A stretch of 64,000 bases of DNA from Azolla caroliniana (GCA_043228905.1 JBHGNT010000014.1:5456001-5520000), one strand, 5' to 3'; positions 14,628 to 64,000 are shown, numbered from the stretch's first letter. The notes: generated by a model from the letters alone, not told the origin. Translations and numbers: made by a program.

Positions 14628-14639
14628 CAGAGCTAACCC

Positions 14640-14679: not shown

Positions 14680-14681
14680 TG

Positions 14682-17228: not shown

Positions 17229-17288
17229 ATAAATATAACTAGGGCAACACTATTTTTGTGTTGTTGTTGATATAGAGAAGTTGTATAG

Positions 17289-18262: not shown

Positions 18263-21200
18263 GTCTACAACTGAGTCTTAGGTCACTTCTTCGAAGGATC
18301 AAACACAGAAATGGGAATGGAGATGAATATTTGTACACCAAAAGAAAATACACAAAATGTTTATGCGGAAAACCCTAATAGGGAAAAACCACGGGAGCCC
18401 ACAAACTCCAAACTATCACTATATGAGAAAGGTACAATCCGAAACTTGGAGGCAACGACCTCGAGCTCTGTTTCTTCGCCAAGCCGCGGTTACAACAGAG
18501 TATCGCTTTGTATCTCCTCTCTCTCTCTCTCTCTCTCTGTTACTCTCTATACAACAATATGACTACAACTACACACACTCTATATCTCACTAAAGTGATT
18601 TTCCTAAGTCATATTTATACTTATATGAACTTAGGGCTATTTACAAATATAGCCTCAATAGGCTTAGTCAAAACATATTTACAAATATGTCTTCTCTTCC
18701 TGTTCTCACCGGGTCCATCTGATCCGGTTTCCGGATCTCCTCCGGTTCTCATCGGGTCCATCCGATCCGGCTTCCGAATCTCTTCATTCATAACCGGATC
18801 CCATCCGGAGGGACCGATTTCCCAACAAACTCCCCCTTCACTTCGGCATGGGATGTCTCATCAGCCCGATCCGCTTTTGGCATGCATCCAACTTGTTGAT
18901 CGTCAACACCTTGGTCAGCATATCCGACCCGTTCTCCTCCGTGTGAATCTTCGTCAACACGAACTCTTGATCTTCTACTCTCTGCCGGATCCAGTGGTAC
19001 CTCCGCTGGATATGTTTCGTCCGGGAATGGTAGGCCGCGTTCTTTGCAATGGCAGTTTGACTGTCGTAGTAGAGCTAGTATTCCTCCTGTTGGATCCCTA
19101 GCCCTTCGATGAAGTCCTTCATCCAGATTATCTCCTTGCCAGCTTCTACAATTGCCATGTACACCGCCGCCTCCGTGGTTGACAATGCAACCGTCTTCTG
19201 CAGGCTCGACTGCCATGAAACAACTCCCCTTGCATAAATCATGACATATCCGAATGTAGACCGGCTGGTATCCACATCAACCGACATATCTGAATTCGTG
19301 AATCCATCAAGGTTGGGATTACCGGAGCCGAACCAGAGGCACATACTCGTGGTGCCTTTCAAATACCGGAGTATCCACTTGACTGCGTTCTAGTGCTCTC
19401 TTTTGGGATTGGTCATGAACCAGCTCACCACTCTGACTGCATATCCGATATCCGGTCGGGTACATACCATCGCGTACATCAAGCTTCCGACGACAGAGGC
19501 ATATGGTATCTTCATCATATCTGTCTTCTCTGCCTCCTTTGTCCTTAGACTTTGTTTTTTGGATATCTTGGAGTTTGTCGGAAGTGTCAATCCGATCGGT
19601 TTCGCGTTCGACATGTTGAACCGTTGAAGCACCTTTGTCACGTACTTCTCCTGTGACAACAACAACAACAGCTTCTTCGACCAGTCCCGGATGATGTGCA
19701 TTGCCAATATCTGTCTTGCCGAACCCAAGTCTTTCATTGAGAAGGTCCTATTCAGAGCCTTCTTCAGCATCTGAATCTTGCCTTGGTCTCATCCGGCGAT
19801 CAACATATCATCCACATATAGGAGTATTAGGAAATCTCCTCCGTCAAATTTCTTCACAAACACGCAGTGATCGGCCTACGTCTTGTGGTACCCTTGGCCG
19901 GTCATGAAGGAGTCGAACTTCCGGTACCATTGCCGGGGAGTTTGCTTCAGTCTGTATAAGCTCTTTTTCAGCCGGCACACCAGGTGCTCCCTCCCTTTCT
20001 TCTCAAATCCTTCCGGTTGATGCATGTAGATCTCCTCTTTGAGGTCACCATGGAGGAATGTCGTCTTGACGTCCAGTTGCTCTACCTCGAGATTCAATGC
20101 TTGCCGCTATGCCCAATATCGTCCGGATGGATGTCATCTTTACTACCGGGGCAAAGATCTCATCGAAGTCCACTTCTTTCTTCTATTGGAAGCCCTTCAC
20201 CACGATTCGGGCCTTATACCTTGGTGGATTTCCAGCATCTCCCGGTTTCAGCTTGTACACCCACTTGTTCCGGAGTGCTCTTCTCCCTTTCGGTAACTCG
20301 GTCAGTTCATATGTGTGGTTCTCATGCAAGGAATCCATCTCATCCTGCATGGCACTCAACCACTTGCGGTTGTGGGTGTCTCTCTTTGCTTCTTCGAAGC
20401 TTTCCGGCCCCCCCTCATCGGTTAGCAACACATGCTCTGCATCCGGAAATCTCCGGGGGGCTCTTCTCTCTCGGAGAGGATATCTCCGTCCTTGGTTTCT
20501 GATTGCCATTTCCTCCGTTTGTTCCTCATTCTCATCCGATTCGGGATCTTGTCCGGTTCCAGTTTCTTCTTCTTCTTCTTCTTCTTCTTCTTCTTCTTCT
20601 TCGGTAGGTACGGTTTCTTGTCCGTATCCGACCGGTACGTCGAGTGTCATCCGGTTACTGTCTAGCGTCCGGTTTTCAACCGAGTAAGTCCTTCTGTCCT
20701 CAAGCCGGTTTTCATTGAATGATCCGGAGGTCATCACCTTCTTCTCCGACTCCCATTCGGAAATGGTCTTGACTTCCATGAAGACTATGTCTTGACTCTG
20801 GAACACCTTCTTGTCGACCGGATACCACACCTGGTAACCAAACTCATCATCGTTGTATCCAAGGAATATGCATGGCCTGGACTTCGGATCCAGCTGTGCT
20901 CTCTTGTCCTTTGCAACATGCACATATGTGAGTCACCCGAACACCTTCAGATGCCGGTAAGATACTTCTTTACCGGTCCATACTTTTTACGGTGAGTCTC
21001 TTTCCAAGGGTGCTGAGGGTGATCTGTTTATCACATAGGTTGTCGTCGTCAGCGCCTTAGCCCAAAACATTGTCGCGGTAATCCGCGCACGCGTGTTGGA
21101 TCTAGGGCGAGACCACAGGGGTCTTGGACCAGAGAGAGACGGAGCATGGAATGTCGAGCTTCACTGTTTCCCACGACTGACCAGGACACCAACTAGAGCG

Positions 21201-43331: not shown

Positions 43332-45223
43332 TGTCGCGAAGTTTCGCGCACGTGTGTTACATGGGCGGGACCACGGGGGTCTTGGACTAGGGAGTACTCA
43401 AGGGATAGAGAAGACCATAGGTTTGCTTTACAACAATCCTACTTCCCGACCCCTTCCCGAGCAAGGGCTTGTTGCCCTTTGTTTTGTGAGGACGGTGGCT
43501 CTCGTTGATCACGACTCGTCGACCTTTCGAGATCACCTCACAAGCCAAGTGATCAAATGGGTACAAGCAAGATGAGCATGCAAGATGAACGCACAAGGGG
43601 ACGATAACACAAACAAGAATGCCCATACATCTTTATGAGGAGGGAAGGTGCATGGGCAAGCCCGAACGCTCCCTCGTCACAAGACGACCGAACATACAAG
43701 GAAGACACAAACACACACACAAATGATGGTACGTCTTTATGAGGAGGAGGGGTGCATGGGCACGCCCGAAATGCTCCCTCGTCACAAGGCGGCCGAATGT
43801 ACAAGGAAGACCCAAACACACACACAAAATGCTTGTACGCCTTTATGAGGAGGAGACGTGCATGGGCAAGCCCGAACGCTCCCCCGTCACGAGACGACCG
43901 AACGTACAAGGAAGACACAAACACACGCACAAAATGCTCGTACGCCTTCATGAGGAGGAGAGGTGCATGAGCAAGCCCGAAACCGTCCCTCGTCACAAGA
44001 CGGCCGAACGTACAAGGAAGACACAAACACACGCACAAATGCTCGTACGTCTTTATGAGGAGGAGAGGTGCATGGGCATGCCCGAAAACCCTCCATCATC
44101 ACAAGACGGCCGAACGTACAAGGAAGACACAAACACACGCACAAATGCTCGTACGCCTTTATGAGGAGGAGAGGTCCATGGGCAAGCTCGAAATGGTCCC
44201 TCGTCACAAGATGGCCGAACGTACAAGGAAGACACAAACACACGCACAAATGCTCGTACGTCTTTATGAGGAGGAGAGGTGCATGGGCACGCCCGAAACG
44301 GTCCCTTGTCACAAGACGGCCGAACGTACAAGGAAGACACGAACAAAGAAAGAAGGAAAGAAAGAAACACGAATGATATCGGCCAAAGAAATAAATACCT
44401 GTTCGATTCCAACGCAAGAGGACCCTTTATAAAATAGGGTTTGATTACAATGGCAACTTATAGTTAACCACAAGCTGAATCAAAATATAAATACTAAATG
44501 CCCTAGAGACAAGAGAAAATCCAAAGACGGCGAAGATGAACACACGAGCACCACCAAAACGCCAATCCCAACGAACCACGACCACCCGAACGGCGAGCAC
44601 ACGGGCTCGCAATGACGAACGGGGCGGAGCAACGTCGAACCAACGAAGCTTGGACTCACGAGCACTTCGAGTGCCGACGCGAAGAAGACGAGGATGTGGC
44701 GATGGGGGGATGAAGGGGTATGAGATGAAGAGAAGTGGTGAATAAGAACATGAGGAGCTCCGAAGGAGAAAATGGTGATAGTCTCCTCCTCCCAAACGTC
44801 CTCTCGTATGAGCCCCCCTCAACCTCCTTTTATAGGAAAAAAAGGAAGGGGGGTCGCTAATTTCGTCTTTAATGCAAAAAGGAATAAAATTCCTTAAATC
44901 ACGCTGCATTGTAAGACTAGATTTGAACCATGCACCTCTAGCTAGAAGTCAATGTGACTATCCACTAGCCCATTAACTCTCTCTTATATAATATATGATT
45001 CTATCTCTATAAATTCTTAGCATGTCTCCCCTCTACCTTTTATCTCTCCTCTCTCTTACTTTTTACATGGGCTGCTATTCATCCTTTCCACCCTTTCTTT
45101 TCCCTTTTCTTTTTCATGAGCGCAATTAATCGCCTTTGTGTGCACACACATTCCACATGCACATTTTGACTCCCCCCCCCTTTCGCCGGCATTTCCCATT
45201 CTCGAGCATGCCACATCACGACA
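43332..45223 (-). repeat. 3' LTR (1892 bp)
   Basis: TGTCGCG...CACGACA; GGACCACGGGGGTCTTGGAC block shared with 6386-7192. Confidence 0.88.
43613..44345. repeat. Tandem array of about 7 x 105 bp inside the LTR
   Basis: CTTTATGAGGAGG-like anchor at 43631, 43735, 43841, 43946, 44051, 44157, 44262. Confidence 0.95.
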
Positions 45224-45282: not shown

Positions 45283-47727
45283 TCAATAGTTCATTTCCTC
45301 CTCCTCATTGACCCCGGAGCTTGTTGTTTGCTCGCCTTTATCTTCGTCAAGGTCATCGAGGTTTGGCTCCCTATCGTGTCGCTTTTTGAAGATTTTGATC
45401 CGCTTGCCTACTATTGGTAGTGCCAGGTTAGTCCCATCGAGTTCAACGAGATGGTAGGTAGCATTATCGTTTGCACTCATTACCACGTACGGCCCAAACC
45501 ATCGCTTTGCGAATTTCCGCATCGAGCTATGTTGATTGTCAAGATTGCTATCATATACAATCACCCAATCTCCTTCTTCGATCTTCCGAGGGCATAGTCG
45601 GTGCGTCTTGTCGAAACGGGCTTTGTTACTTAGCCTAGCCGCTTCTAACCTCTCCTTTGCCAACTCCAAGTCTTCGGGTCTTCTCTCAAGTTGTCTTATC
45701 CTTGTTGTTAGAAGCTCTTCTCGACTCATCTCGTTTTCCCATGGCATTGCTACCGATGATGCGATCGTGTTTTCAATGGGCATCACCGGCTTTTGTCCGT
45801 ACATGAGTTTAGCTGGCATGAACCCTGTAACTAAGCTATGAGTTGTTCTATCGGCCCACAAGGCATAAGGTAGTAACCAAGGCCAATTCCCGACTCGCCC
45901 ATCGCAAGCTCTTACAATGGCTTTTACAATGGGCTCGTGTCCGCGTTCTATCTTTCCATTAGCCTCCGGGTTATAAGCGGTCGTGAGAGAGAGCTTCACT
46001 CCAAGTCATTCAAAGAGCTATGTAGCTTCATGAGCATTCAACTCTCCTTTGTCGGCCACTATCGTTCCCACACATCCGTACCGGCAGATGATATCCTCAA
46101 GTAAGAATTTACACACCCCCGCTGTCATTTTGTTTGCTAAGGCTCGCCCTTCTACCTGGTTTGTTAGGTCTTCTCTTGCTAGCACCAAATATTTCATTTG
46201 GCCCACTCCCATCGGCATCGAAACCAAATCCACCATCCATTTGAGTGGCTAGGTCGGGTGCAACTCGTCCCTATGGCGTATGTTGGAGTGTATCTGGCAG
46301 CTTTCACACGTCCCCATGAAATGGGTGACATCCTTGTACATTCCCAGCCACCAATACTTCTCCTTTAACTTCTCGAATGTTGCCCACGTTCCTCTATGCC
46401 CCGCCCAAGGACTCTCGTGGAACTCAGACACCAATGTTGTCTTGTCCACTTCCTTTATGACCACTCGTTGTGGCGTCCCCGTCCTTCTCTTCGGGTGCCT
46501 CCAGAGGAATCCCCCTCGTAGGAAGTACTTGTACACTTTCTTTCGGACTCTTTATGCTTCCTCCTTCGACCATGAACTATTCACCGTCATTGAGCTTAAG
46601 AACTTGCCAATGTGTAGCCACTCCCCTTCGTATTCACTTTCGTTGAAGGTGTGGAGTACTCGCACATCTCGATCATCTATAGACGCTTGGGCCGTCTTAA
46701 AGAAGTCAAGAGCGACATCCTCATCTTCAGACACCATGTCGCTTTCTCCCTCGAATCTTGTCCTTGATAGCATATCTACCATGGTATTGTTCTTCCCTAA
46801 AATGTGGCGAATCTCTGGGTTCATTGATTTGATGTAAGCAATCCATCTTAGCATAGCTAGGTCAGGTTTTCTGACCCGATTAGGTAATCTTTATCCGCCT
46901 TCACTGCAGACACAATACCCCAAAGCTCATGTTTTACTTGGGCGTATCCTCGTTGTCGCTCGCTTAAGACCTTGGCTCCGAACCGGATGGCGTAGCGTGT
47001 ACCAACCTCTCCTTCTTGGTTGATGACCCATCCGATTCCTGTTGGACTCGTATCTACCATCACATAGATGGGCACCCCTTCCTTGTATACTGCTTTTTGT
47101 AAAGCTAATGCCGCTACCAACATTCATTTGAGCCTCTTCATTGCCTTTGTTCTTCCTCCCACTTGAACTTCCACCCCTTCTTGAGTAGCCCATACAAGGG
47201 ATCGGCTAGGTGAGCGTACTGTGGGATCCAGATGTGGTAGAATGCACAGGCACCAAGAAATCGCCTCGCCTCTATTTGTGATTTACATTCTTCCCTCATG
47301 TTTGTGATGGCGTTCACCTTTGCCGGGGATGGTTTCCGTCCGTACACCCCCGCACAAGTGTCCCACCACAAGAATCTCTGGTTGTCCGAATGCTGATTTC
47401 TCACCCGAGAAGGTCAAACGTGCATCTTCGAGTCTTTGTAGAACCTTCTCACAATCGGAGATGTGATATGCCACAAAATGTCTGCACCCATCCTCGTCCA
47501 AGGTTTCATCTTTCTCTGCTTCAGAGCACCCTTTTATGGGGATGTCATCGAGGAACGGCATGGTGATGTCGGGGATGCAATCTCTCAATACCTTGTTCAT
47601 TACATTTACCATGTGGGCTACAAAGTTAGTGCCTCCTTGTGGCAAGGTACACATTCGCACTACGCTGATAGGGGTCCGCATCGTCGTGATGTCCCTCCTC
47701 TCCACATCTAGTTCGACTATAGATCAC
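45283..47727 (-). pseudogene. gypsy H pol (RT-RH-INT), fragmented
   Basis: ORFs 47283-47705, 47138-47404, 46857-47123, 46552-46854, 46249-46536, 46018-46236, 45283-45999. Confidence 0.9.
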
Positions 47728-48187
47728 TGTTACTCCTAGGGTCGGACAAGAGCCTAATACAGGGTGTCCACTTAAGACACTTCACCAAAGGGTGGTACGG
47801 CAGAATGACTTACGGCACAACGCTTAATTAGACCTTAATCGATTACTTAAGAATACATCATTAACACGCGTAAGATATACAATAAGCACAGAACGGTAAT
47901 CAACACTGAAAGATTAAGGCAATAAGTTCTATTAATTATCCGCTCTCGATTACATTGTAACCGGGTCTTTATATAGGTCTCCGGTGCGAAATACAAAACG
48001 GTGCCAACCGACACCTTTTCGGGATCGGTCCGGATCCGGATCGGCATACCGATTCCGGTCCGTCCTTCCACATCTTCTCATATATTACTATATATTTTAA
48101 GGCTACTAATTACAACAGTTCCCGAATAAACTAATCCTTTCAAACTCTGGTTTGGATCTCCTTAAGCCTTCTTGCCGGCCGGTAACA
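47728..48187 (-). repeat. 3' LTR of G (460 bp, inner end inferred)
   Basis: 6-bp terminal inverted repeat TGTTAC...GTAACA; first 59 bp match 63942-64000; TATA-like CCTATATAAG on minus. Confidence 0.8.
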
Positions 48188-48189
48188 CA

Positions 48190-48228
48190 TGGCACGCCCG
48201 TGGGACAATACCTTGTACGTCGAACCCA
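48190..48228 (+). promoter_or_regulatory. Inverted second PBS (tRNA-Arg(UCU)) at the PPT position
   Basis: TGGCACGCCCGTGGGAC-N13-TCGAACCCA, 2 nt from the LTR. Confidence 0.75.
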
Positions 48229-48941
48229 TTATCCGACCCTTTTACGCTTCGTCCAAAATGTCCAGAATGCTTTGCTCCAAAATTTCCAATGGCTCTTCGG
48301 GAATCTGTTGTTGCTGATGTGGCTGCTGTTCCATTTCTGGTTGTGGCTGCTCCGTTTGTGCCTTCTCCGTTTGGGGCTGCGGCTCTGTTTGTTGCTCTGG
48401 CACCGGCGTTTCCTTCGTTGGTTCCTCCGTTGGAGTTGTCTCTAGCTGACTGACCCCGGCCTGGTCCCCGTCTGGTCCTACTACCGGAGACGGTTCCTCA
48501 TCACTAAGGTTGACCATTGCCGTCTTTCTCGCTTTTTCTTCCCGAAGCCGGGACCGCTCATAGCTCTCAAACTGGATTTGAGCCTCTAGCCGATCGTCGT
48601 CTAGTTGAGCTACGAGCTGTCGGACCTACACCAATTGTTCATCCGCTAGGGCTATGAAATCTTCAGCCAGCTCATCCCTTCTGGCGGTGAAGTCCTCCGA
48701 TGTCAGCATATAACAGTCGTCACCCTCCTTCCGCCGGTTTTCCACGTCCGCCCTGAGCAATTGGAGTTCCGCCGTATTCTGCGCCCATTTCGTCCACCAA
48801 TGCATAGAGCTGTCGTCAATCAAGCTTTTGGTCTTAGTGAGCCATGACCGAAGGATGCACTGGATCCGTTCGGCTCCCATCCGTGATTTGTTTTCTGCGG
48901 CTTGTCGCTTCTCTTTCAATTGCTTGATGATACGGATTGTG

Positions 48942-51900
48942 TGTTGGAAGCAATGTCGTCTGTGCGGAAGATCTTGAAGCACTCGATTCCTGTTTATTCC
49001 CTGTGTATGACAGAATGTAGGTCGTTGCACAGAGAGAGAGAGAGAGAGAGGCACAAAAGAACTTCTTATTTCATAAAGCAACAATACAACAACCAACCTC
49101 ACAAAGAGGTTACAAGGTCACTATATATAGTGACCGACTTAGGGCAACTACCCTTTATGCTAATTACATAAATGGCCAAAACGGGATGGTGTGAATACGT
49201 CCATTATACACATGTATTCGACACTCCCCCGTAATGGGCGTATACATGGGTTATCTAAGATTACAGGTATAGACTTAGGTTCTCGGACATATCAGCTTTG
49301 CACAGTAGTCGGCAGGATCCGAAGACAGAAGACCGAACTGGTCGGGTCGGAACAGTTGAAGCCGATCATTAAGGGGCTGATGTCGGTTGTCGGGAACCAT
49401 CCTGCTCTGTGTCCGGCTCTAACCGGACTGGTTTGTCGTTACGCCCATCTGATGCCGAAGAGACCGAAAACGGTCTGCCGAGAGACATTTGGTCATTCCA
49501 TCTGCGACATTATCGGTTGTGGATATTTTCTCTAGACCGATTTTCCCTGAAATGACGCAGTCCCGAACGAAGTGATATCGAACGTCGATATGTTTGGAGG
49601 CGTTGTGGTGAACCGGATTTTTCGACAAGGCAACAGCACCTTGACTGTCGCTGTAGACAACTGGAGCCGAGTCATGTTCGACTTGTCGAAACGTGTGCGC
49701 CAGCCGACCGAGCCACAAAGCTTCTTTTGCTGCGTCGGACGCAGCTACATATTCTGCTTCGGTCGTTGAGGTCGCTGTGCACTCCTGAAGTTTCGACTTC
49801 CACGAGATTGCTCCATTGCCGAATTTGAAGCAGTATCCGGTTGTTGATTTCCGACTGTCTATACAGCCGGCGAAGTCCGAGTCGGTGTAACCGACTACGC
49901 CTGAGGTTCGGTTCGGTCCGAAAAGAATGCCATGGTCTTTTGTGCCAGCCAGATATCTGAACACATGCTTGACTGCGTTCCAATGCGATCGGCCAGGATT
50001 GTGCATAAATCTGCTAACGACTCCTACGGCATGAGAGATGTCAGGCCGTGTCGCGACCATCAGGTACATAAGGGAGCCGACTGCCGGTGCATACGGTACC
50101 GACTTCATATCTTCCCCCTCCGAACCGGATGTCGGGCAGTCCCGCTGAGAGAGCCGAAGATTCATAGGGAGTGGGGTTGAAGCAGATTTGGCTGATTGCA
50201 TGTTGAAGCGTTCCAAGACACGTCCGATATAGTCGGTCTGAGACAAAAAAAGATGTCGTTTATCGCGATGCCGACTAATCTTCATGCCAAGGATGTGTCG
50301 TGCCGGACCGAGGTCCTTCATGGCAAACTTCAACCGCAGTTGCCGAACGAGATCGGCAAGTTCGCCCACGTGGCGTCCAGAAATTAGCATGTCGTCCACG
50401 TAAATGATGAGGAAGATGGGTGATCCATCTCGAGCTGTGTTGGTGAAGAGACAATGGTCCTCATCGCTTTTGGAGAAGCCGATTGATTGGATGAAGTCGT
50501 CGAACTTCTTGTACCATTGTCGCGGTGCCTGTTTGAGGCCGTATAGACTCTTCCTGAGTCGGCAGACTAGATGTTCTTGGCCAGTTGCCACGAAGCCTTT
50601 TGGCTACTCCATATAAATTTCCTCCTCGAGATCACCATGGAGGAAGGCTGTTTTGACATCTAGCTGAATCAGCTCCAAGTTGTCGGCTACCACGACGCCG
50701 AGCAGAAGACGAAGGGTTGTCATTTTCACCACTGGTGAAAAAATCTCGTCGAAGTCGACGCCATATTCTTGTCGGAAGCCCTTCGCAACTAATCTGGCCT
50801 TGTACTTTGGGGTGGTCGAATCAGACGTCTCTTTTAGTCGATAAACCCACTTCCAAGGAAGAGCACGTCGGTTCCTAGGTAATTCGACCAGATCCCAAGT
50901 CTTGTTTGCCCGGATGGAGTGCATTTCCGACTCCATCGCCAGATGCCAGGTGGCCGAATCGACAGATGTCGATGCTTCTTCATAAGACGTCGGTTCGCCG
51001 GCGTCGGTGAAGAAAATTCCAGGAGAATACCTCTCCGGAGGTTGCGACAGTCTCTCGGATCGTCGAGGTATGATTGGACTGGTCGCATCGGGTATCGAGG
51101 TCGGATGGTCCGAAACCGAATCATTCGGCTGTGCCGAGTCAGAGTTGTCCGAGTCGGTAGTATAAGGTTCAGCTACCCGTGAAGCTGACCGTGTGTTGAG
51201 AGCGGGGCCTTCTTGAAGGGTCGGCACATCGGAGAATGTTACCCTTCGGACTTCGATCGGTTTTTCGACTGATGGATTCATAGCCGACTCGTTGAACACA
51301 ACGTCCGAACTTCGAACGATTTGTCTGCGTTCGGGGTCCCAGAGTCGGTATCCCATTTCGCCGTCTGATCCATATCCAAGGAAAATGCATTTCCTGGACC
51401 GAGGTGCAAGTTTTCGGCGATCATCTTTCGGAATGAGGGCGTACGCCTCGCATCCGAAGATCCTCAGCTTGTCGTAATTCGGCTTGCTGCCGATCCATAG
51501 TTCCTGAGGAATTTGAAGTCCTAGAGGTCTACTTGGCGACATATTGATTATGTGTACTGCCGTGAGTAGAGCCTCTGCCCAGAAGCCATCCGACAGTCCG
51601 GAGTGTTGGAGCATGGAAACTATCCGTTCTTGGATTGTCCGATTCATGCGTTCGGCAATCCCGTTTTGCTCCGGACTGTGTGGTGCCGTAAATTCACGTC
51701 GGATGCCGCGTTGTCGGCAGAATTTGACGAATTCGTCGGATTTGAACTCTCCCCCATTATCGGTCCGAAGGCATTTCAGCTTTCGGTCGGTTTGATTTTC
51801 TACCATAGCGAGCCAATCGGTGAAGATCGAGAAGACACGATCTTTGGTGCGAATTGGATAAGCCCACACCTTTCGAGTCGAATCGTCAATAAAACTGACG

Positions 51901-54290
51901 AAGTAAGAGGCACCGCCTAGAGACTGATTCGGCATTGGGCCACAGACGTCCGAATGGACTAAATCGAGAGGTCTCGTCTCTTTTGGTGCTGATGTCGGGT
52001 GTGATGCGGCTACTTGTTTGCCATACTGGCAATGCTCGCAAAATTGATGGTCCGAGAAGGAGAGTTTGGGGATGTATCCGGCGCTAGATAGGTGCGTGAT
52101 GCCGGCCTTGCTGAGGTGTCCTAATCTTCGGTGCCATAATGATGACACAGGAATATCCACCAAAAACAGGTTACCCTCTCTGAGTGTAACATGTAACGGA
52201 TACAGTGAGTGTATCTTGGGTCCTCTAGCAAGTAGGAGGTTCCCCCTGTGGAGTGTCCACCCTCCCGAAGAAAAACCGGCACGAATGCCGTCTTCATCTA
52301 GTTGTCCGACTGAGATCAATGGCCTTGTGAGCTCGGGTACATGTCGGACATTGTGGAGTACAAGTGTAGAGCCACCTGCAAGGTTGAGCTCTACTGTGCC
52401 GATTCCGATGATGTCACAGTGTTGTGAGTTGCCGACCCGAACTGAGTCGGAGTGACGGATCGTATATTGCCGAAATTGGGACCGATGAGGAGTCACATGA
52501 AATGACGCGCCCGAATCCAAGAGCCATGTGCTCGATTCTTCAGTCGTGAGCAGAACTTCTGATCCGACTGGATTTTCGATTGATAGTATATTCGGGTCGT
52601 CCGGTAGTACATCAGCTGAGGAGCTGACGTAATTGATCTCCTCATGCCGGCCACTCTTCTTGTTGTTCTTGTTCTTGAGTGCGCGGCAGTCGGCTTTGAT
52701 GTGTCCGGGTTTCTTGCAATAGTTGCAGATTCGGTTATCCCGTGACTGGCTCCGTCTTCGCTGATTGTTCGGCGGTCGTGAGGAATCTCTTCCTCGTATG
52801 TTCGATCGGTCTGTCGAACCTTGTACTACGTAAGCGTCGTCTGTTGAGTCTTTGGCGAAAGACTTTCTCCGAGCTGCTTCGGTCAGGATTGCGCTCGTGA
52901 CTTCGGAGTATTTAACAGCCGTGGTTGACGCGTTGCACACGGTTGTGACGAAAGTTTCCCATGATGAGGGAAGGCTGCTCATGAGTATCATTGCTCTGAG
53001 TTCATCCTCGATTGCCGTCCCCTGAGACGAGATTTGGGATCTTATGCTTTCGTACTCATTGAGGTGTGCTTGAACCGAATCGGATTCTTTCATCCGCAAG
53101 TTGTAGAGGCGCCGGATCAGAAACATCTTCGTTGCGGCGACCTTCTTTTCGTAAGTGTCCGACAGTGTTTTCCACAGTTCGAATGCTGTCGTACACGATT
53201 GCACCGTAAAGTATACCGATTCCGATAGGTGCATCCGAATCGTGGCGCGGACGATTCTGTCCAGCTTTTGCCACTCAGTTGGTTTGTATCCTTCTAGAGG
53301 TTCTTCATTTTCGATGGGATCGATTTGCCCCTTGACTATGAGATAGTCCTGCATTTGCTCCTTCCAGAAGTTGAAGTTCGATCCATCGAACTTGCGTAGA
53401 CTCATTTCTGACGAGCCGGATGTTGATGCCATCAAATTCGGTTTCGGTTGACGAAGCTCGGTTCGGAGTTGACTACGAATCTTGTTGGAGTGCAGCCGGT
53501 TGGCTCACCCGATATCGTTCTAGTCGGATTTGAACCCGAGTCGGTTCGGCTTCGGAACTTGCTCGAATTGACTCCGGTAACTTGAGGGACAGAACCGACT
53601 GGTCTTCCTGAATGTTGCCGAGTCGGAGTGAGCCCGGTTCGCTTCGGATATATGTGCCGAATACCGATTATTGAAACCGATTATCTGGACCGATTCGGCT
53701 TCGGGTGACTGCAGCGACGAGAGAGACGGATCCGAGTGATCCTCCCGAATGTCGATCAGCCAGATGAAGCACGAATTTGGGTTGTTGTCAAAGTTGCACA
53801 AGGGGATTTCACCTCGAGCGGTTACGATCACAAGGGACAGAGTACAACCTGCTGGCTTACTCCAAGCAAAGATGATCTAACGCGATGAGATGCAAACATG
53901 GTTTTTCTTCTTCTTCTCTCTTCTTCGAATGACGCAGGAAACCGAATGCAGAGACGACGGCCGACAGCGGATTGAAGGACCGACTACTGTGCAGGCTCTG
54001 ATACCAGATGTTGGAAGCAATGTCGTCTGTGCGGAAGATCTTGAAGCACTCGATTCCTGTTTATTCCCTGTGTATGACAGAATGTAGGTCGTTGCACAGA
54101 GAGAGAGAGAGAGAGAGGCACAAAAGAACTTCTTATTTCATAAAGCAACAATACAACAACCAACCTCACAAAGAGGTTACAAGGTCACTATATATAGTGA
54201 CCGACTTAGGGCAACTACCCTTTATGCTAATTACATAAATGGCCAAAACGGGATGGTGTGAATACGTCCATTATACACATGTATTCGACA
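48942..54290 (-). mobile_element. Full-length young Ty1/copia element I (5349 bp), TSD TTGTG
   Basis: 282-bp LTRs 48942-49223 and 54009-54290 identical by eye; PBS GGCTCTGATACCA at 53994-54006; PPT GGGGGAG beside 49223. Confidence 0.98.
49419..53435 (-). pseudogene. copia I gag-pol with a single in-frame TAG at 50604-50606
   Basis: 943-aa and 390-aa ORFs in the same frame: EEIYME*PKGFV. Confidence 0.93.
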
Positions 54291-57200
54291 TTGTGTCCGC
54301 CTCCTGCTCCCTATAATGCGACAATTGATTTTCATAGGTTGTTTGCAACCTCTGTAATACCATTGTCGCTCTTTCCTTATCTTCATGGTTCTGTTTGTGG
54401 AGCTCCATCCGGTCATTCGCCGCTTCCTCCAATAGCTTGGAACTCTCAGCTCGTTCTTCGGCGAGTGCCGTTGTGGCCCTATCAACTTCTTGCTGGAGCT
54501 CGGCCATCCGTTCCTGTTGTTGCTTATACTTCGTCTCCAACTGCTTGTAGTCCCGGTGCAGATGGTTAAAATCATCGGTCTTCTACTTCAACCTCTGGTT
54601 GATCTGCCGGCGCGCGCAGTCCTCCCGGTCCTTCTGTTGACGGAGTTCCTCCTTCAGCCTCTCGATTTCCGTCTCCGCTATCCGTCGCAGCTTGTCTTTT
54701 TCCTGCAGCAATTTCTCTTTTTCCTCCTTTAGCCGGTCGTAAGCATGATGTCCTTTACGCAGGTTTTCCTTTGCCCGGCGAAGGTTCTTAGCAGTCTTTT
54801 TTAATTCTTCTTCGGCCGCCTTCTTCAAGTCGCGTTCGCGGCTCTGTAATGCTTCTTGTGCGGCAAGTTCATCTCGTAATTCCGCAAGCTCTTGGGCTTG
54901 CGCCGCATCTTTTTCTGGGACACTTTGTGTCTCCGGGGTCTTATTCATATGTACATCAACCGAAGTCACCGGTGCTTGGATCTGCATTGCGGTTAAGGCC
55001 ATTTTTGCCATGTCTCTTGTGATCCGATCCAAGTCTTGTTCGAGGCACCGGATCCTTGACCGGGCCGTCTCCAATTCGTTGGTGGTGACGAGCAACCGTT
55101 CCGTTTTCGCTCTTTCCTCCGCCTCTATGCATCCGACTACTCCGGCAATTTGTTCTCCTATCCACCAGAGCCATTGGCTGCCGATGCACTATTGTTGCGC
55201 TTGCACGGAGGGTTCGTTGATGGGTTCACTCGTCGGTGGCTGGTCCCGCCTTACTACGTCGAGCTGCACTTCTGGTTCTGCCAGCAGACCACTTTGTCGT
55301 TCCGGCTCTGAGTGTGTTTCGGCTAGCCGCCCCTTGTCTGCTTGTTCTTGGCCGCCTGGGAAGGTTGGCCTTTGTATATCTAGCTCTTGAGTTACGGGAC
55401 TGTTGTTGCCTGTTGCGCAGGGACTTCTATGACCGGTTCCATCCGAACCGGTTCCGGTGCCTCCCTTGGCGTGGGATGCTTAGTGTGAGTTGCGGGCGTT
55501 CCATCCTTCTGTAGGTCCGAACGCTTCCCGACTGATTCAGCGGTGCTCTTCACTGGCCACCGTTGGAGGTGCTCCATGGGTTCTTCCTCCATTTCCTTCG
55601 CCTGAGTCCCGACATTCATTCTTGCCGCCAAAGTGTCCGTTTCTTGCTGCACCAGTCGGTGGAGTGGGCTCTTCAGGGCCCGTGCTAGTGTCTCCTCATG
55701 TGTGTCTGTCGGCCGCTTCCGGCTGGCATGCTCCTTCGCCGCATTTTTTGCGTTAGCCGTCTTCCCCTTAGTGGCCTTGGAGGCCAACAGCTGTTGTCGT
55801 TTCGAAGTAGGTTTCGGGGTGTCGTCCGTTGCTCTTCCTCGCTTCTTGGTCTAGACGGGCTTGACCGGCGGCACCAATAGGGTGAGCCATTGCGTCACCG
55901 CATGCCATATTTTCCGGCCTTCCATGCCATCCTTTCCTCTTACTATATCAATAGTCGTACACAGCCCGTCGGCGATCAACACCGGCCAATCCACCTTGAC
56001 CCCTTCGTACGTTGCGATGATCAAGCCTGCTCGGTTATGAGGCATGACGGGGGGTCAAGGTTACACGTGGCCAAACTCATGGAGCGCACAGGCAATTTCG
56101 CGGAATAGCATATCTTCGCCGCCCTGTGTCCTGTAGCCCTTGCTGGCGAGAGATTACTCACCGAAATATTTGATGAGTTGCTCGGAGGTAGGATTGTCGA
56201 TCGTGTAGGTGCCTCCCTCCGGAAGGCCTATTAACGCACGGATCGCCTCCTCCGTGATACCTCTGTGTCGATTTCTTTGATAATCTTTTCGGCCTCATGT
56301 GGCGCCGCCTCCATGATCGTTAAGAAACCCTCCAGTTTGTGCTGCTGTAGCCATTTCTTGGCGGCTTCAGACAACGTTTGGCAATCCATCTCTGCGTCGA
56401 GGTCGGAGAGCGTTGGCGAGGTTTGGTGGTGGGGAGAGTGTGAGAGAGAAAGTTCCGAGGGAGGGGGTTCTCTGTGTGCGAGCTCTCTGCGATTGATCTT
56501 CACGCGTTTATCTGCGTCTGTTCTCCTTGGTTCGCGATAGGAGAAGGTCTCGATGCGTGGGGGTTTTTCTCTCTGCATCTTAGCGCCTTTTTCCAGCCTC
56601 CGCATGTGCAGGTCGTGTACAATAATAGCATTGCGTGTCATGTGGCGTGCCTATTCATAGCCCCTCGTACCTCTTTGGCGTGCCTCTTTACTCCTCGTTT
56701 GCATGGCCGTTTCCACCACTCCTTTTCATGATTTATTTCATTCCATTTGATTTTTTTATATTTTTTATATTTTTCTTTTGTTGAAAAGTTAATTGTGTGG
56801 TTAATTTTTTTCCGGTCCTATCGGACCCTTACCCGAATCGCGCACCTTGCTAACCTCTTGACGGTTTGCCATCGTTATGCTTTCCCTGGTTGCCGGCTCG
56901 TGCTCCCCCTTACCGGCTTGGGGGTAGTTGTTTTCCTCACGGGTTGCCGTCGTGGTTGGCCTGCCGGCGTCTGATTCAGCGTCGGCCCTTTGTTCAAATG
57001 GGTTCTTTGGCATAGGTCCTTTGTATGGCTTTAGTCTAAATCCATTGACCCATTTACCCAACACCTTGCCGGCAAGTGTCCCTAACTGGTAAGACCCATT
57101 AAACCCGTGTGTGATCTAGTACGGTCTGGTCCATCTAAACCGTAGCTTGCCTGGCATTTTACCCATCCGGGTCTAGAACACTAGTATCGGCTTGCCGATT

Positions 57201-58289
57201 TCGAACATTTTCTCGTTTCCCTTCTAGTGCCGATCTACAAACGCTTTCCGTCACCATTGTTACAATTCCAGGTGCATGATGCTCGCCAGTCGGTGTTCTT
57301 CTAGTTCACACAGAGCCTTTAACCGAATTGCCTCTGATTCCTTTTAATTAAGTCGTTTCCCGAATCTGAATCCGTAAGCTCGGTACTTGGAATTCGACCG
57401 GCTTGACTACCTCTAATCCGAATGCTAACCGGAACGGTGTTGTTTGGATGCTTGTTTTGTACACTGTCTTGTAAGCCCAGAGCGCACTGTGCAACTTCGT
57501 GTCCCAATCCGTCCGATTCTCATTGACGATCTTGCGTAGGATATTCTGTAGCGTTTTGTTTGTTGACTCCGCTAATCCGTTGGCTTTTGGGTAGTACGGG
57601 GTGCTCCGTTTATGTACTACCGCATAGAATGACGTCAAGCTCTCCACCACCTGTCCAAGAAAGTGCCCTCCTTGGTCACTTATCAGCTCTATGGGGCATC
57701 TGTACCGGCACCAAATGCATTCATATAAGAATTTTGTCGTCGACGCCGCGGTGTTATCTCGTAAGGTTTTGGCTTCCACTCATTTAGTGCAGTAGTCCAT
57801 CGCGACGATCACATGCCGGTTGCCAGTTCTCATTGCTGGTGGTTTAAATGGTCCGACAAAATCCAGTTCCCATTTCTGAAATGGTTCTAGTGGTAGTACT
57901 GGCTAGTGCGGCATCCTAGCTTGTTCTGTTGGCTGGCCCATTCGCTGGCATAGATCACACTCTTTCGCGTACCGGACTACGTCTTTCAATGTAGTCGGCC
58001 ACCATAGGCCACTTTGCCATATTTTCCTTGCTGTCGCATCTCCGGCGACTCCGCAGTGTGCTTCCCGTAGTATTACCTCCTTCTCGTCGTTGCGCACCGC
58101 TCGTCGCCATATACCATCCGCACCTTTGTGGTATAACGTGTCCTGTAAATAACAGAAGTGCCGACTTTGTACCGCCAGGTGCTTCCTCTCGTCCCGGTTC
58201 ATCTCCTCCGAAGGCAATCCGGTACTCAAAAACTGGTGCATATTAGTTAGCCACTTATCTTCTTGTGCCACCATTTCATCTGTTGCCAT

Positions 58290-58953
58290 TGTCGTGATGT
58301 GGCATGTCTAGTGCGAGAAAAAGTCAAAAATTGAGGATCCACACACATTTCACGAATACTTGAAAAAATGAAAATAAATAAACCTAGGTCACAATGGCAT
58401 TGAGTGCATGTAGAGGGTTACAAGTAAGATTTGAACCTTGCACCTCTAAGGTAAGAGGCAATTACCTTACCACTAAAGCTACTACTAAGTGCTTTAGATG
58501 TTCTATATTTCTTTCTCATATTCAGTATTCCGTAGGAAACAAACAAACAAAACCGTGTACACAAAACCACGGTTTTAAGCCCATGGTTTCCTGCATGTCA
58601 CAAAGCAAAACTGTGTGCACAGAAACCATCGCTCCAAGCCCATGGTTTTGTGCATGGACAAACATATAAAACCCCTAGTACGGCTTGTGTAAAGGGGGGG
58701 GCTCAATATGATATCATGATCATCATCACCATCAATAATATAAGCTTCCATTTCTTCTTCTTCGCATCTATCTTGTAATGATTTATCTACTTCTCAAGTG
58801 TACAATCTTCAATCTTCTCAAGTGTAATAGGTCTTCCTCCAATCTTACATTCACATCATCCTCTTCTCAATACCTTGACGGACATCCTCCTTGGTCCAAG
58901 ACCCCGGTGGTCCTACTCAAGTGAAGCACGCTCGCACGCGCATCTTCGCGACA
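58290..58953 (+). repeat. Solo LTR of the TGTCGTGA family, 4-bp TSD CCAT/CCGT
   Basis: TGTCGTGATGTGGCATG...CTTCGCGACA; removing it restores the RH-INT linker. Confidence 0.88.
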
Positions 58954-59811
58954 CCGTTTCCGTGGTGACTTGAAAAAGCTCTGCATCCGGAAACTCGTCC
59001 GGTACTCCGTCACCCATTTCGCCGGAATCTAACCAGCTTAGATAATCCGCTACCGCATGTTGTATGCCGGGTCGGTGGAATATCTCGAACTCGAACTCCT
59101 GCAACAGCAAAGTCCACCGGGCCAACTTACCGGTAAGTGAGGCTTTGGATACTAGGTAGAGGAGTGCCGAATGATCTACATGGAAGGAAAACTTTCTCCC
59201 CAATAAATAGTGCCTGAATTTTGTTACGATGTAGATCATGCCTAAAGCTTCCCTTTCCGTGGTGGAGTAATTTCATTCGACTTGGGATAACTTCCGGTTT
59301 GCGTAATATACAAGCCGGTACCATCTTGGCTCCGTAAGTTGCATCAACGCACTCCCGATTGCAATGTCGGACGCATCCACGAACACATTAAATTCCTTCG
59401 CCCAATCCGGGGGTTGCACTACCGGCGCTTGCGACAATAGAACTTTGAGTGCCCGGTACGCCTTGTCTTCGGTGTCTGTCCACTGGAACGGTGTTCGGTG
59501 TACCACAGCATGCAGTGATGTAGCTAGGTCCGCCAAATACCGGAGCATTCGGCTATGCCAACGGATTTGTCCTAAGAAATGACTCAATGCCTTTGCCGTT
59601 GTTGGTGTCGGTGCCTCCAGGATTGCTTTTACTTTGTCCGGATCTACGGCAATGCCTTCCTTGCTCACAATATGCCCTAGTAGGGTTCCGCTGAACACTC
59701 TAAATACACACTTCACCGGATTCAGGCTTAGCCGGTACGCCCTACACTTCTCTAGACATAGTCTGAGGTGCTGCAAATGATCTTCTTCTCGGCTATAGAC
59801 GATGATGTTGT

Positions 59812-60455
59812 TGTTAAACACAGTGCTCGGCCACAACCGAGGAATAGGATCAACTCACAGAAAACAGGAAATACAAAATGCTCGAAGACAATAGAGAGAA
59901 GAGTGCACAGGATGTTTTACGTGGAAAACCCTAAATGGGAAAAAACCACGGGAGTCCTCAAACTCCAACTATCACTATAAACAGAGATGTACAATGGTGA
60001 AGCTACAAGGCAACAACCTTGAGCTCACTGTCTTCGCCACAGGCGGCGGTAATACACAGAGGCAACGACCTCTTCGTCTCTCTCTCTCTCACTCTCTCTC
60101 TCGGCTGCTCTCACTTCGCTCCCTCTAAGTGGAAAACAAGAAGAATGAGCAACAACCTATAAACTGTTTGCCCTAAGTCATATTTATACACATATGACTT
60201 TCGGGCTATTTACAAATATAGCCTCAAGGGCCCTTGGCAAACATATTCACAAATATGTCCCCGCATCCGGATCTCTCTCCGGGTACATTCGTCATCCGGC
60301 TCCGTAGCCGGGGTCTTCATCATCCGGCTCCGTAGCCGGGTACTCTTCATCCGGCTTCATGCCGGGTACTCTTCATCCTCCGGTTCCGTAACCGCAACCG
60401 GGCTTGCCGTCATTCATCTCCGGACATCCCATCCGGAGGGACCGAAATCCCAACA
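59812..60455 (-). repeat. Solo LTR, copia A family, TSD GTTGT
   Basis: GTTGT-TGTTAAAC...CCCAACA-GTTGT; right half near-identical to 3940-4233. Confidence 0.95.
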
Positions 60456-62140
60456 GTTGTCAAGGAACACCTGCATAAAAGCCGGTATGTATTCGCCAAA
60501 GATCTCCATGATAATCCGTTGGAATGTTGCCGGTGCCATTTTCAGTCCGAACATCATCACCACGGCAACAAACACTCCCCATTTGGTGACGAAAGCCATT
60601 TTCTCTTGATCATTAGGGTGCATCCAGATCTGATTATACCCACTGAATCCGTCTAAGAAACTGTAGACTTCATGGCCGGCGACGACATCCAAAACTCCAT
60701 CCGTAAATGGAAGTGGAAATGCATCCGTTACCGTTGCCGCATTGAGCTTCCGGTAGTCGACACAAACTCTAATTTTGTCGTTCTTCTTCGGTACAACTAC
60801 GATCGGGCGATTTCTTTACAGGACGGATGAAGCCAACCCTCAGCAATTTGTCGATTTCCTCCTTGACTTTGGCGGCGTAGTTTGGGTTCATCCGGTACCG
60901 ACGCTGTGCTACAGGCTTGGCGTCTTTACTCCGATGTATCTGGTGCTGATACAACTAAGGATCCAGCCCTCTCATATCCTCGTAAGACTAGGCAAATACG
61001 TCGCGAAACTCGTTGAGGAGTGTAATCATCGCCGTTTTGTTCTTTGCATTCATTTCTTTGGCGACGTGCACCGGTTTTACCTCCTCCAACGTTCCTAGAT
61101 TTACCTCTTCTAATTGAGACATTTTTACGCGCTGTGATACGGCCATTTCTCTTTCCAACGCCTCCTGCGCTTGCTGTAACTCCCGGATTGCTTCTTTATT
61201 CGGTTCCGCTTCGGTTCCATCCGGTTGCAGTAAGTAGGGTGATACTGCTTCGGCGACGTCAATTTCGAATAGGGGTACAATCTTCAAGTTCTCCTGCAAG
61301 TACTGATCTTTTCTTCGTCTGCTAATCCTTCCATCATATTGACGCACTCCGCATATAACGGTGTTAGATCCTTGACGGTGCCCCTCCTTGGTTGTGTTGG
61401 TACCCGTACCTTCGCTTTTCCCCGCCGGAACGTAATCATATTCCTCCTCCAGTTCTACTTGATGTGTGCCGTCTTTAACTAAGGGTGTCCCAACAATAAT
61501 GGGTACGCTCCTTGAGCCTGCAACTGGAGAACTACGGCTGAGATTTGGAATGTGTGGCCCCCGATGGTTACTTCTATGTCCCGTATTAATCCTGTCGGTT
61601 GCACCGAGCTTGTGTCCGCCATTCGGAGCCAGAACGGACATCGCTCCCACTCTTGGATTCCAAGAGCATCGCACGTCCGGAGGCTTATTACATTAACGTC
61701 GGAGCCTCCATCTATTACCGTGCCAGGGAGTTCTTTCCCTTTCACAATGGCAATAATTGCCGGACTGTTAGTGTCCACCACCGCCGGTCCCTCCTCCGGA
61801 TTTGAGAAGAATGCCGGAGCCGGTGGTGTTCCGCCTATCGTCATGCCGAAGTTGAGTCCTTCTGTGAATCTTGGTACTAGCTGCAAGAGTCGTCCTAACG
61901 GCAGCGTGATCTGGCATTCCTGCAATGCCTGCCATGTCACGTTTTCGGATTGATTGCCGCTGGCGAGCTCTTCGGTATTCTCCTTTTGCTGCGTAAGTTC
62001 TGCTACGTTTCGCTCATTTGCCTTTTTCACCCATTCCGTTGCTTGTTTCCGGATGGCCTCTTGTGTCTCCCATTCCGTCGTCTTGCCCTTCGACCTTGTG
62101 GTGACCTGTTGTAGGTCTGCGACTTCGGCGACTACCATGT

Positions 62141-63887
62141 TTACTGCCGGTCGCTTATCATAGCTCTTTGTCGGACATTGATTACTATAATGTCCTTCTT
62201 GTCGTCAATAATAGCAATATGCCTTCCGGGTATTGCTGGATTCGGCATTGTTTCCTGTACCCGGTGGAGGACCTGTGGTAACCACGGGGCTCTGGTCCGG
62301 TTGGGTGCTTGAGGCGCCTTTTTCCGGTTCCCGTGGGTGGCTCCCTTTTTTGAAATGCCGTTTTGTATTAAAGTTCTTTTTGTTGCGGTACCCTTGTTGG
62401 GGTTGGTCGTCATATCTCCCGTAATCTTCCCGTCGTTGGTGATACCCGGGGGAGTGATACCAGTTGTGATGCTCGTACCGTCCATTGTAATCTCGGTACT
62501 TGTCATATCTCTTGTACCGGTCATAGTTGTCTCGCCGATCGTCATACCGAACATCCTGTGCCGGTCGATATCACTCCTCTCACCGCCAACGTTCGTCCTC
62601 TTCGTCTCGGTTGCTACGTGGCTCGATTTGCCGGACTGGTGGTGCTTGCCGATTCAATAAAGTATATTCGCACCGATCCATCGTGTGGCTCGTAGAGTGT
62701 GCACTCCAATGACGAGTGTCCGGCGTTCAAGCAGGTCGTGCATTGGATTGCTTGCCGGAAACGGAGATCCTCATTGGTTGTTAACGCTCGTTGGAGGGCT
62801 CCCATTGTTAGCCAAGAGCTCGTTTTTCCATTTCACTAACCCGGTCGACGGTGCTTGTGCGAAATTCGATGACCATGCATACTGTTCGTAGAGGTTCCCG
62901 GAGCGCGGCTAATAATATAGCTCGTGTTTCTTCCTCCGAAGGTGCGCAGGTAAGCTGACTGTGCATCCGTTGAAACCGGATGACAAACTGTGGGATGCTC
63001 TCCCCGGGGTCCTGCTGGATGGTATAAAATAAGCCCACCATTTCTTGTTGGTCCACCTCCTTTTGAAAGAACTGCAAGAATTTGTCTTTTAGGTCCGCAA
63101 AGGTGGTGATGGTGCTGGGGTCCTGCGTTTGGTGCCATCTGGCGGCCGGTCCTTCCAATGTCACGCCGAATTCGGCTATCTTAGATCGTTCCTCTTTGGC
63201 CGCAATTAACCGTTGTGACACATGGTTCACCTCCCATGTTTTTTGAAACACGTGAACATGAGCCTTCGCGTCCGGGTCATCCCGATACTTGGAGTACTGA
63301 AACGGCATGTCGTCGTCCAGTGTCGGTACGTGGGCTAGCGGTATCGGTGGTCTTTCCTGTTGTTTCGTCGGCGTCGGAGGTCTTTGCCGGTCTTCCCTTG
63401 GTGTTGCCGGCTCGACTTCCGGTGTCGGAGGTCTTTCTTTGTCTTCTTCTGTCTCCGGAGGTTGCTCCACGTCTAGGGCCGGGGTTTCCCGGTCTGCCAA
63501 CTCTGGTTCCGGTGTCGGTACTGTATCTGACTCCTCATCCTCCGGTCCTCCTAGGGTGTCGTTACTGCTGCGATAGTTCGTGTGTGCGCTGTAACCCCCT
63601 TCCGAATCCGATTCCAGCGCTGAAAATGCTTCGGATTCGCGGTCTCTTCCGGCCAAGGCTTGGAGAAGGGATTCCACTTCCCGGAGACTGCTTAAGTTGC
63701 TTCCTTCGTCCGGGTAGGCATTTTGTTCCAGACGGAGCGACTCCTCCACCACTTTCCGGATCACTTTGGAAAATGATCGATCCGTTCGGATTTCTTCCGC
63801 TGCTTGCTGGAAAGCCTCTCGCCGCCTTCTCCATTCAGCAAGTCTTTGTGCTCTCTCCGTAATCGGGTCGTCTGTTGGCCTAGTCAT
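62141..63887 (-). pseudogene. G gag with zinc knuckles
   Basis: ORF 62808-63887 (TLEGPAARWH...FVIRFQ), then CTTCLNAGHSSLEC. Confidence 0.88.
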
Positions 63888-63923
63888 CCATTCCGCCGCT
63901 GTTCACTGCGATTGTGCAGGAAT

Positions 63924-63934
63924 TGTGGTCGCCA
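63924..63934 (-). promoter_or_regulatory. Canonical PBS, tRNA-Arg(UCG)-like
   Basis: TGGCGACCACA, 7 nt after the 5' LTR; matches the recalled tRNA end ...TGTGGTCGCCA. Confidence 0.75.
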
Positions 63935-63941
63935 AAAACTA

Positions 63942-64000
63942 TGTTACTCCTAGGGCCGGACAACAGCCTAACACAGGGTGTCCACTTAAGACACTTCACC
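63942..64000 (-). repeat. 5' LTR of G (cut by the window edge)
   Basis: Direct repeat of 47728-47786. Confidence 0.92.

Follow-up and report, generated by a model that had tools for sequence, protein, structure and literature searches.

How the second DNA strand is begun in a long terminal repeat (LTR) retrotransposon that has no polypurine tract (PPT) is the question raised by a Ty3/gypsy element of Azolla caroliniana. The element spans positions 47728-64000, with its coding sequence on the minus strand, of a 64,000-nucleotide stretch of DNA (GCA_043228905.1 JBHGNT010000014.1:5456001-5520000) that was analysed as a whole and is referred to as the window. All LTR retrotransposons and retroviruses are taken to prime their plus strand from an RNase H-resistant PPT, and annotation tools therefore demand one. 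The first-pass annotation of the window had reported that the PPT is absent here and that the opposite strand has the layout of a tRNA primer-binding site (PBS), and had proposed that both DNA strands are primed by tRNAs or, alternatively, that either transcript orientation can support replication of the element. In the current analysis we find that, as read from comparative sequence, the PPT is replaced in this Athila-like family by a tRNA-derived module abutting the 3' LTR, which suggests, short of proof, initiation of the second strand by a host tRNA or by a mimic of one.

In the sense orientation the 3' junction consists of a 17-mer ending in CCA, the dinucleotide TG and the LTR opening with TGTT (Table 1), and the plus strand of the window accordingly reads LTR, CA and TGGCACGCCCGTGGGAC, the PBS-like layout described earlier. 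The longest purine run in the 30 nucleotides preceding the 3' LTR of the window copy is 4. Six lineages were compared, namely the main copy, a second and diverged copy in the window (copy 2) and the loci L025, L035, L034 and L039, and in all of them the longest run in the same interval is 3-4, so that the reported absence of a PPT extends to each. Within three or fewer mismatches the 17-mer occurs twice in the window against 0.15 occurrences expected, and both occurrences are 3' junctions.

The 17-mer forms part of a longer module of 41 nucleotides. When a 13-nucleotide insert is left out, the module of the main copy reads TGGGTTCGA followed by GTCCCAC-GGGCGTGCCA. Its T arm is the same as that of human tRNA-Arg-TCT, the T arm of tRNA-Arg-TCT-3-1 being GTGGGTTCGAGTCCCAC (PMC13267816). 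Scanning the genomes of bacteria and archaea with a sequence pattern brought up a tRNA-Arg(tct) gene (L037, called by ARAGORN) whose last 28 nucleotides are GTGGGTTCGAGTCCCAC-C-GGGCGTG-CCA; the insert-free module matches this 3' end at 27 of the 28 bases, CCA included, the missing base being position 66. The 17-mer thus corresponds to tRNA positions 59-76 without 66, and the site of the insert is precisely the junction of positions 58 and 59. The search pattern was built from the module, and the hit therefore shows only that an end of the Arg(UCU) type exists. Eukaryotic tRNA genes do not encode the CCA, from which it follows that the module is related to a mature tRNA. Reverse transcriptase (RT) copies 18 nucleotides of a tRNA (positions 59-76) before it meets m1A58, and this is the canonical length of a retroviral PBS. 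The likeness to the 3' end of mature tRNA-Arg(UCU), short of one base, which had been pointed out in the first-pass annotation, is borne out by these comparisons.

In its plus-strand form the candidate tRNA-pairing site is TGGCACGCCC(N)GTGGGAC. With the bacterial tRNA-Arg(tct), which is a proxy and not the tRNA of the host, the match extends over 10 and 7 nucleotides separated by a one-base bulge, and the antisense module is predicted to pair with it in two parts at -48 kcal/mol, with a 13-nucleotide bulge in the template and a one-base bulge in the tRNA. As sense RNA the module adopts a T-arm-like hairpin (-14.8 kcal/mol). A scan of 48100-48400 against Rfam gave no match, tRNA included, at E-values up to 10, and ARAGORN called no tRNA gene in the window or in the plant loci L001-L003, L017-L035 and L039-L042. 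A search of the literature with sequence strings returned nothing relevant for the 3' motif and its variants and only human and animal tRNAs for the T-arm strings. The module was unmatched in a scan of viral contigs; a 16-mer of the LTR matched 12 viral contigs, and these matches are presumed to be due to chance.

A further gypsy family of the window has an ordinary 5' PBS, which begins TGGCACGC..., shares CAAGCGTGCCA with the module of L035 and provides an indirect sign that a host tRNA may end in ...GCGTGCCA. The same kind of tRNA end (..GCGTGCCA) serves in that family as the ordinary minus-strand PBS and is found inverted at the 3' junctions described here. A gag homologue (23427-23518) lies downstream of this PBS junction, and the partner LTR and the 3' junction of the family were not found within the window.

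The argument depends on where the LTR begins. Public contigs were aligned to 47200-49200 and their loose ends were clustered; the strongest cluster is situated at 48228 (46-82 contigs per run) and none is listed at 48187/8, as would be seen if the LTR in truth reached 48228 and a PPT lay further in. To locate the boundary, metagenome contigs were scanned with a 30-mer from inside the LTR, which gave 20 loci of the plant host. Many metagenome contigs are collapsed assemblies. At 16 of the 20 loci the end of the 3' open reading frame (ORF) is followed by the module, TG and TGTT..., and one more (L027) ends before the LTR start. At the remaining three (L019, L024 and L033) the LTR opens with TGTTGAC, with unrelated DNA upstream and no module. 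L033 is a true 5' LTR, in which a telomere-like flank is followed by TGTTGACC...AACA, CAGTTTT, a PBS and gag. The insertion at L033 (1150-1228) is in telomere-like repeats of the Arabidopsis type, (CCCTAAA)n. L042, a long contig from another study, carries an entire element, its two LTRs included, with a near-perfect target-site duplication (TSD), GGACA and (A)GGACA, shifted by one base. In this element the 5' LTR opens with TGTTGG after DNA unrelated to it, and directly before the 3' LTR stands ...GGGTGTGCCA-GG.

Since unrelated DNA precedes the 5' and solo LTRs in L033, L019, L024 and L042, the LTR starts at TGTT, as had been annotated, and the motif lies outside it. An LTR continuing through the motif to 48228 is ruled out by the same four loci, and a misplaced boundary retains almost no likelihood. 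The loose ends at 48228, whose consensus resembles the ORF end of the lineage of L035 and copy 2, are accounted for by the module being more conserved than the adjoining ORF end. Beyond these 16 loci the module is found at both 3' junctions of the window, at those of L039, L041 and L042, and once more in L031, at a second site. Far from most copies having a normal PPT, every 3' junction of the clade that was seen carries the module.

The module is more conserved than its surroundings. The junction of copy 2 is 89% identical to 48184-48228, with flanks at no more than 70%, and among the six lineages the mean pairwise identity is 0.87 over the 43 nucleotides before the LTR, compared with 0.65 over the 60 nucleotides upstream and 0.66 over the first 60 nucleotides of the LTR. 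The module also forms the sharpest edge of similarity in the public contigs, and L039 represents a true 3' end, present in single copy and with a flank of its own. From these alignments the module is evidently under constraint, and in public contigs motif and spacing are conserved across the clade. Another site, still further diverged, opens L031; its layout is the same, its spacer is AA and its insert retains the stem of the mini-hairpin by a change from GTAC/GTAC to GGGC/GCCC. This covariation is no more than suggestive, since it comes from a single lineage, and RNAalifold gave a different hairpin without covariation.

The layout is kept in still more distant relatives. In L041 (59% identity in pol) a GGGTTAC segment and a hairpin of 6-7 bp precede CTCCACCAGGTGTGCCA-AG-TGTTGG, and the pol of L042 is 55% identical to that of the family. 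Invariant in the clade are G[C/T]GTGCCA, a spacer of exactly two bases, whose identity varies (TG, AA, AG or GG), and TGTT. The 5' junction of L041 and L042 is ...ACA-CT-TGGCGA... with an 18-nucleotide PBS, so that with ACA-CT-TGGC at one end and the inverted site at the other the two ends of these elements mirror each other. In all lineages TGG is found 2 nucleotides from the LTR end, within the 0-5 nucleotides at which a PBS is placed. Tandem repeat arrays of ~109-nucleotide units with a segment resembling a tRNA T arm, GGGATTGAACCCAGGACC, on the strand shown are present in L041 (13250-16000), downstream of its element.

An outgroup element from Riccia sorocarpa (L043; 45% identity in pol) has LTRs of 971 bp that are 99.8% identical, the TSD CCTTT/CCTTT, an Asp-type PBS and an ordinary PPT, GAGAAAAGGGGCA next to TGTGATAC. 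Since the outgroup has a normal PPT, the module is a derived state that took the place of one. A Marchantia locus (L044) is strongly rearranged. The module is carried by L034 and L030, the copies with long open frames, and is therefore compatible with a working element.

On the favoured reading, which we hold tentatively and at somewhat less than an even chance, both strands of this element are primed by tRNAs, the plus strand by a second tRNA of the Arg(UCU) type at an inverted two-part PBS that has taken the place of the PPT. One tRNA at the 5' PBS would prime minus-strand DNA as usual; RT would then copy the 3' module and RNase H would strip the template RNA. The minus-strand DNA would thereby bare a site complementary to the last 17-18 nucleotides of the second tRNA and, in the main family, also a site complementary to the 5' half of its T arm. 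Annealing of this tRNA would bring its CCA-3'OH to within 2 nucleotides of the LTR edge, from where plus-strand strong-stop DNA could be primed, and integrase would trim the two extra nucleotides to leave integrated LTRs that begin with TGTT. The annealing of a free tRNA to minus-strand DNA, the priming and the trimming are all inferred steps. Since integrated 5' LTRs start with TGTT, plus-strand strong-stop DNA must start at TGTT or 2 nucleotides before it, and the primer must therefore end in ...GCCA or one to two bases further.

Priming by a tRNA would alone account for the CCA, the limit at 18 nucleotides, the T-arm half-site and the fixed spacing of 2 nucleotides together, and is in this respect the best reading. 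Several points weigh against it. The support for priming is that of comparative sequence, and the complementarity is to a proxy tRNA and not to the host's, with position 66 missing from the match and with a proxy search pattern that had been built on the module. At several T-stem positions the 17/18-mers of L041 and L042 depart from those of the main family; such drift would be unexpected under one conserved tRNA, and it may be that only the last ~10 nucleotides matter. The insert and the tRNA-like arms are conserved to the same degree, a pattern that a folded cis element fits equally well, and the covariation of its mini-hairpin comes from one lineage. No precedent was found in the searchable literature, a point that cuts both ways.

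The drift of the 17/18-mers and the conservation of the insert are better fitted by a primer made from the element's own RNA. In such a scheme RNase H would cleave after ...GCCA and the retained RNA oligonucleotide, a non-purine primer protected either by resistance of the module to RNase H or by RT binding it in the manner of a tRNA initiation complex, would prime the plus strand. Priming within 2 nucleotides of the CCA is then explained equally well. The whole module, with its insert and hairpin, would be conserved as a unit, and changes in the 17/18-mer could accumulate from one lineage to the next with G[C/T]GTGCCA held constant; the T-arm-like hairpin of the sense RNA is in keeping with this. 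The plus-strand primer of Ty1 is a short and imperfect purine tract, GGGTGGTA. Five of the last 12 nucleotides of the module are pyrimidines, however, unlike any known RNase H-resistant primer, and the 27/28 match to a tRNA 3' end with CCA, as well as the split at positions 58/59, are left without a reason. We consider an own-RNA primer rather unlikely, and it is the main rival of tRNA priming.

It is improbable that the module is a cis-acting RNA element with some other role, such as tRNA capture or packaging, RNA stability or transport, or a pause, and that the plus strand is primed elsewhere, at a weak purine run (AAAAGGG, AAGGGG) 50-60 nucleotides upstream followed by long trimming by integrase. 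A purine run of 5-8 nucleotides does exist near the stop of the extra ORF in most lineages. The 5' spacer of the main family is 7 nucleotides, so that trimming to the conserved CA would exceed 2 nucleotides at that end, and a conserved 'PPT core' has been annotated ~18 nucleotides before the LTR in FIDEL and Athila-like elements (PMC2844528). Against this, the run is very short, varies in position and is absent in L028 and at the second L031 site. Trimming of ~50 nucleotides is to our knowledge without precedent, and the invariant CCA with exactly two further nucleotides is unaccounted for.

RT is known in general to switch templates onto tRNAs. The module could accordingly be an inert relic, captured once as a tRNA fragment in this manner and carried by copies that are dead or mobilised in trans by another route, and the window copy is indeed old and degenerate. 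There is little to commend this, as the module exceeds both flanks in conservation in six lineages, is kept at 55-59% identity in pol, and is carried by copies with open gag-pol and extra-ORF frames that have no alternative PPT. It is scarcely credible that sense and antisense transcripts both serve for replication, each by way of a separate PBS: the mirror layout LTR-NN-TGG... at both ends is no evidence for it, since two opposed sites necessarily produce such symmetry, the coding capacity lies entirely on one strand, and gag-pol has the orientation indicated by the conserved TATA box and by the U3-R-U5 polarity of the LTR, both of which are kept in the second copy, so that this part of the earlier proposal is not favoured.

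The proposed site shares with canonical PPT priming, as known for Ty3 (PMC5371799) and as seen in the nested copia described below and in the Riccia element, a position abutting U3 and an inferred linear DNA with two extra nucleotides outside the integrated TG...CA ends. It differs in having no purine tract, the RNA at this position being the 3'-end sequence of a tRNA with CCA. An ordinary 5' PBS has, on the opposite strand, the same arrangement of LTR...CA, 2 nucleotides and TGG with ~17 nucleotides, stopping at tRNA position 59; the present site differs in lying at the 3' end, in being inverted and offered on minus-strand DNA rather than genomic RNA, and in the one base that is missing relative to the proxy tRNA. 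Extended tRNA contacts are also known from the primer activation signal of HIV-1.

Another parallel in organisation is the 5'-3' bipartite PBS of Ty3 (Gabus et al. 1998, reviewed in PMC5371799), in which the 3' segment is part of U3 and is the complement of the tRNA that primes the minus strand. Both are two-part tRNA-related sites at the 3' end of the genome that involve the T arm. In the present family, in contrast, the RNA has the sense of the tRNA, the site is outside U3 and the tRNA is not that of the 5' PBS. Complementarity between the module and the 5' leader was no better than in shuffled controls, and a 5'-3' bridge of the Ty3 kind is therefore not indicated.

In hepadnaviruses, primer translocation makes use of the virus's own RNA as primer, and not of a tRNA. 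Other unusual modes are the self-priming of Tf1/TAR and the half-tRNA of copia/Bianca (PMC6317226). They show in common that the priming of retroelements may depart from the textbook scheme. Self-priming and half-tRNAs concern the minus strand, however, and none of these modes employs a tRNA-like site for the plus strand. In the searchable literature, which did not cover key Athila papers, we found no tRNA-like or inverted PBS at the position of a PPT, no tRNA-primed plus strand and no PPT-less elements; an earlier mention in the Athila literature is possible.

The placement of the family was based on the architecture criteria for Athila of Neumann et al. 2019 (PMC6317226). The intact relatives L034 and L030 encode gag, protease, RT, RNase H and integrase and an extra ORF in the sense orientation, of 978 and 969 amino acids. 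This extra ORF (~970 amino acids) has no Pfam domain, and its homologues were found only in contigs of the host plant; protein searches with gag and the extra ORF returned only short host-plant metagenome contigs, several of which are assembly collapses, ordered 3' internal region, LTR, 5' internal region, and hence uninformative on the 5' boundary. In all lineages the C-terminus of the extra ORF (..EEPL.[IT]LE..ILDILDE.) stops 15-20 nucleotides before the module. No match to PF00075 or PF13456, looked for as an archaeal RNase H, was obtained in the pol ORFs of L034 and L030; the Tat-type matches P0140 and P0143 carry these domains. The missing archaeal RNase H speaks against membership in Tat/Ogre/Retand. 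The closest named relatives in pol are from liverworts (41-45%), a fern and pine, all at 45% identity or less.

By its architecture, rather than by an RT phylogeny, the element thus appears to be an Athila-like, non-chromovirus Ty3/gypsy element. It shares with the Athila lineage (PMC6317226; preprint 10.64898/2026.03.20.713144) the order gag-PR-RT-RH-INT without a detected archaeal RNase H, the large sense extra ORF and a conserved junction between the internal 3' region and the LTR. It differs in that junction being without a PPT and in its 5' PBS, which in younger members of the family is TGGCGACCACGA and not of the Asp/Asn type TGGCGCCGTTGCC that dominates in Athila.

The window copy itself is heavily degenerate with many stops and measures ~11.3 kb when nested insertions are subtracted. 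Its domain order on the minus strand, as established by Pfam matches, is gag, protease, RT, RNase H and integrase, and the annotated position of gag-pol on this strand with a PBS beside the 5' LTR is confirmed by sequence and Pfam. The innermost 59 nucleotides of the right LTR are identical to the left LTR (47728-47786) at 56 positions, with 3 differences. A TATA box in the LTR is kept in the second window copy and in relatives, and since it is on the same strand the polarity of the LTR matches gag-pol. The RT region is split by a foreign repeat of ~0.58 kb (59837-60413) that had been missed before. The similarity of this repeat to 3679-4233, 18343-18727 and 24949-25484 is 74-90%, and the segment at 24949-25484 sits in the U3 part of another gypsy LTR with tandem repeats.

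Table 1. Features of the gypsy element, its 3' module and related sites in the window (positions from the first letter of the stretch; - denotes the minus strand)
Feature	Position	Strand	Remarks
Candidate TSD ATCAC, 5 bp	47723-47727	.	adjoins 3' LTR; partner would fall past the window end, ~64402
3' LTR, 460 bp	47728-48187	-	sense TGTTACC...AGTAACA; on plus TGTTAC...GTAACA
TATA box CCTATATAAAG	within 47728-48187	-	in 3' LTR; agrees with gag-pol strand
2-nt spacer	48188-48189	-	sense TG, between CCA and LTR; read from sequence
tRNA 3'-end-like 17-mer	48190-48206	-	sense GTCCCACGGGCGTGCCA; plus strand PBS-like TGGCACGCCCGTGGGAC
13-nt insert	48207-48219	-	sense CGTACAAGGTATT; can form 4-bp mini-hairpin with AAG loop
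Segment like 5' half of T arm	48220-48228	-	sense TGGGTTCGA; tRNA positions 50-58
Degenerate 3' end of sense extra ORF	48242-48941	-	TAA at 48242-48244; severed at 48941 by copia
Nested Ty1/copia	48942-54290	-	LTRs 282 bp, 100% identical; separate from gypsy
Rest of degenerate region from integrase to 3' LTR	54296-57318	-	extra-ORF remnant; no Pfam match
Degenerate gag-protease-RT-RNase H-integrase	57319-63887	-	Pfam matches
Integrase	57348-58289	-	Pfam
RT/RNase H	58913-60692	-	Pfam
Protease	61479-62138	-	Pfam
gag	62808-63887	-	Pfam
5' PBS	63924-63934	-	TGGCGACCACA; 7 nt from right LTR
7-nt spacer, 5' LTR to PBS	63935-63941	-	sense TAGTTTT; CAGTTTT in relatives
5' LTR, innermost 59 nt (U5 end)	63942-64000	-	runs off window end
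Second, diverged junction copy (copy 2)	14635-14681	+	own LTR from 14682 (TGTTGGC...)
Ordinary 5' PBS of another gypsy family	24325-24349 (PBS to 24338)	-	LTR end GGCAACA, spacer CTTT, TGGCACGCTTGGTG

The Ty1/copia element nested in the gypsy element had likewise escaped the first-pass annotation. It is flanked by the TSD TTGTG (48937-48941 and 54291-54295), has a PBS of the iMet type, TGGTATCAGAGC, and a PPT, ACGGGGGAG, with GGGGGAG directly against its own LTR. Its gag-INT-RT frame is broken just once, into ORFs of 943 and 390 amino acids, and the element is very young. On account of its nested position these largest ORFs of the region belong to copia and not to gypsy. Downstream of copy 2 the region 14682-17230 has a rearranged structure, in which the LTR is followed by a second LTR without its first ~45 nucleotides (15110-15367), tandem repeats (15370-16100), an LTR end (16656-16772) and sequence similar to the internal 3' region (16849-17228). 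Elsewhere in the window a tandem array of ~105-bp units in at least 7 copies occupies 43616-44403.

A whole clade of elements, some copies of which have open frames, has thus exchanged the PPT for a tRNA-derived module at exactly the priming position. If a tRNA or a tRNA mimic does prime there, this would constitute a new mode of reverse transcription and would open a new point of control over transposons to host tRNAs or tRNA fragments, and annotation pipelines would be expected to misjudge or miss such elements.

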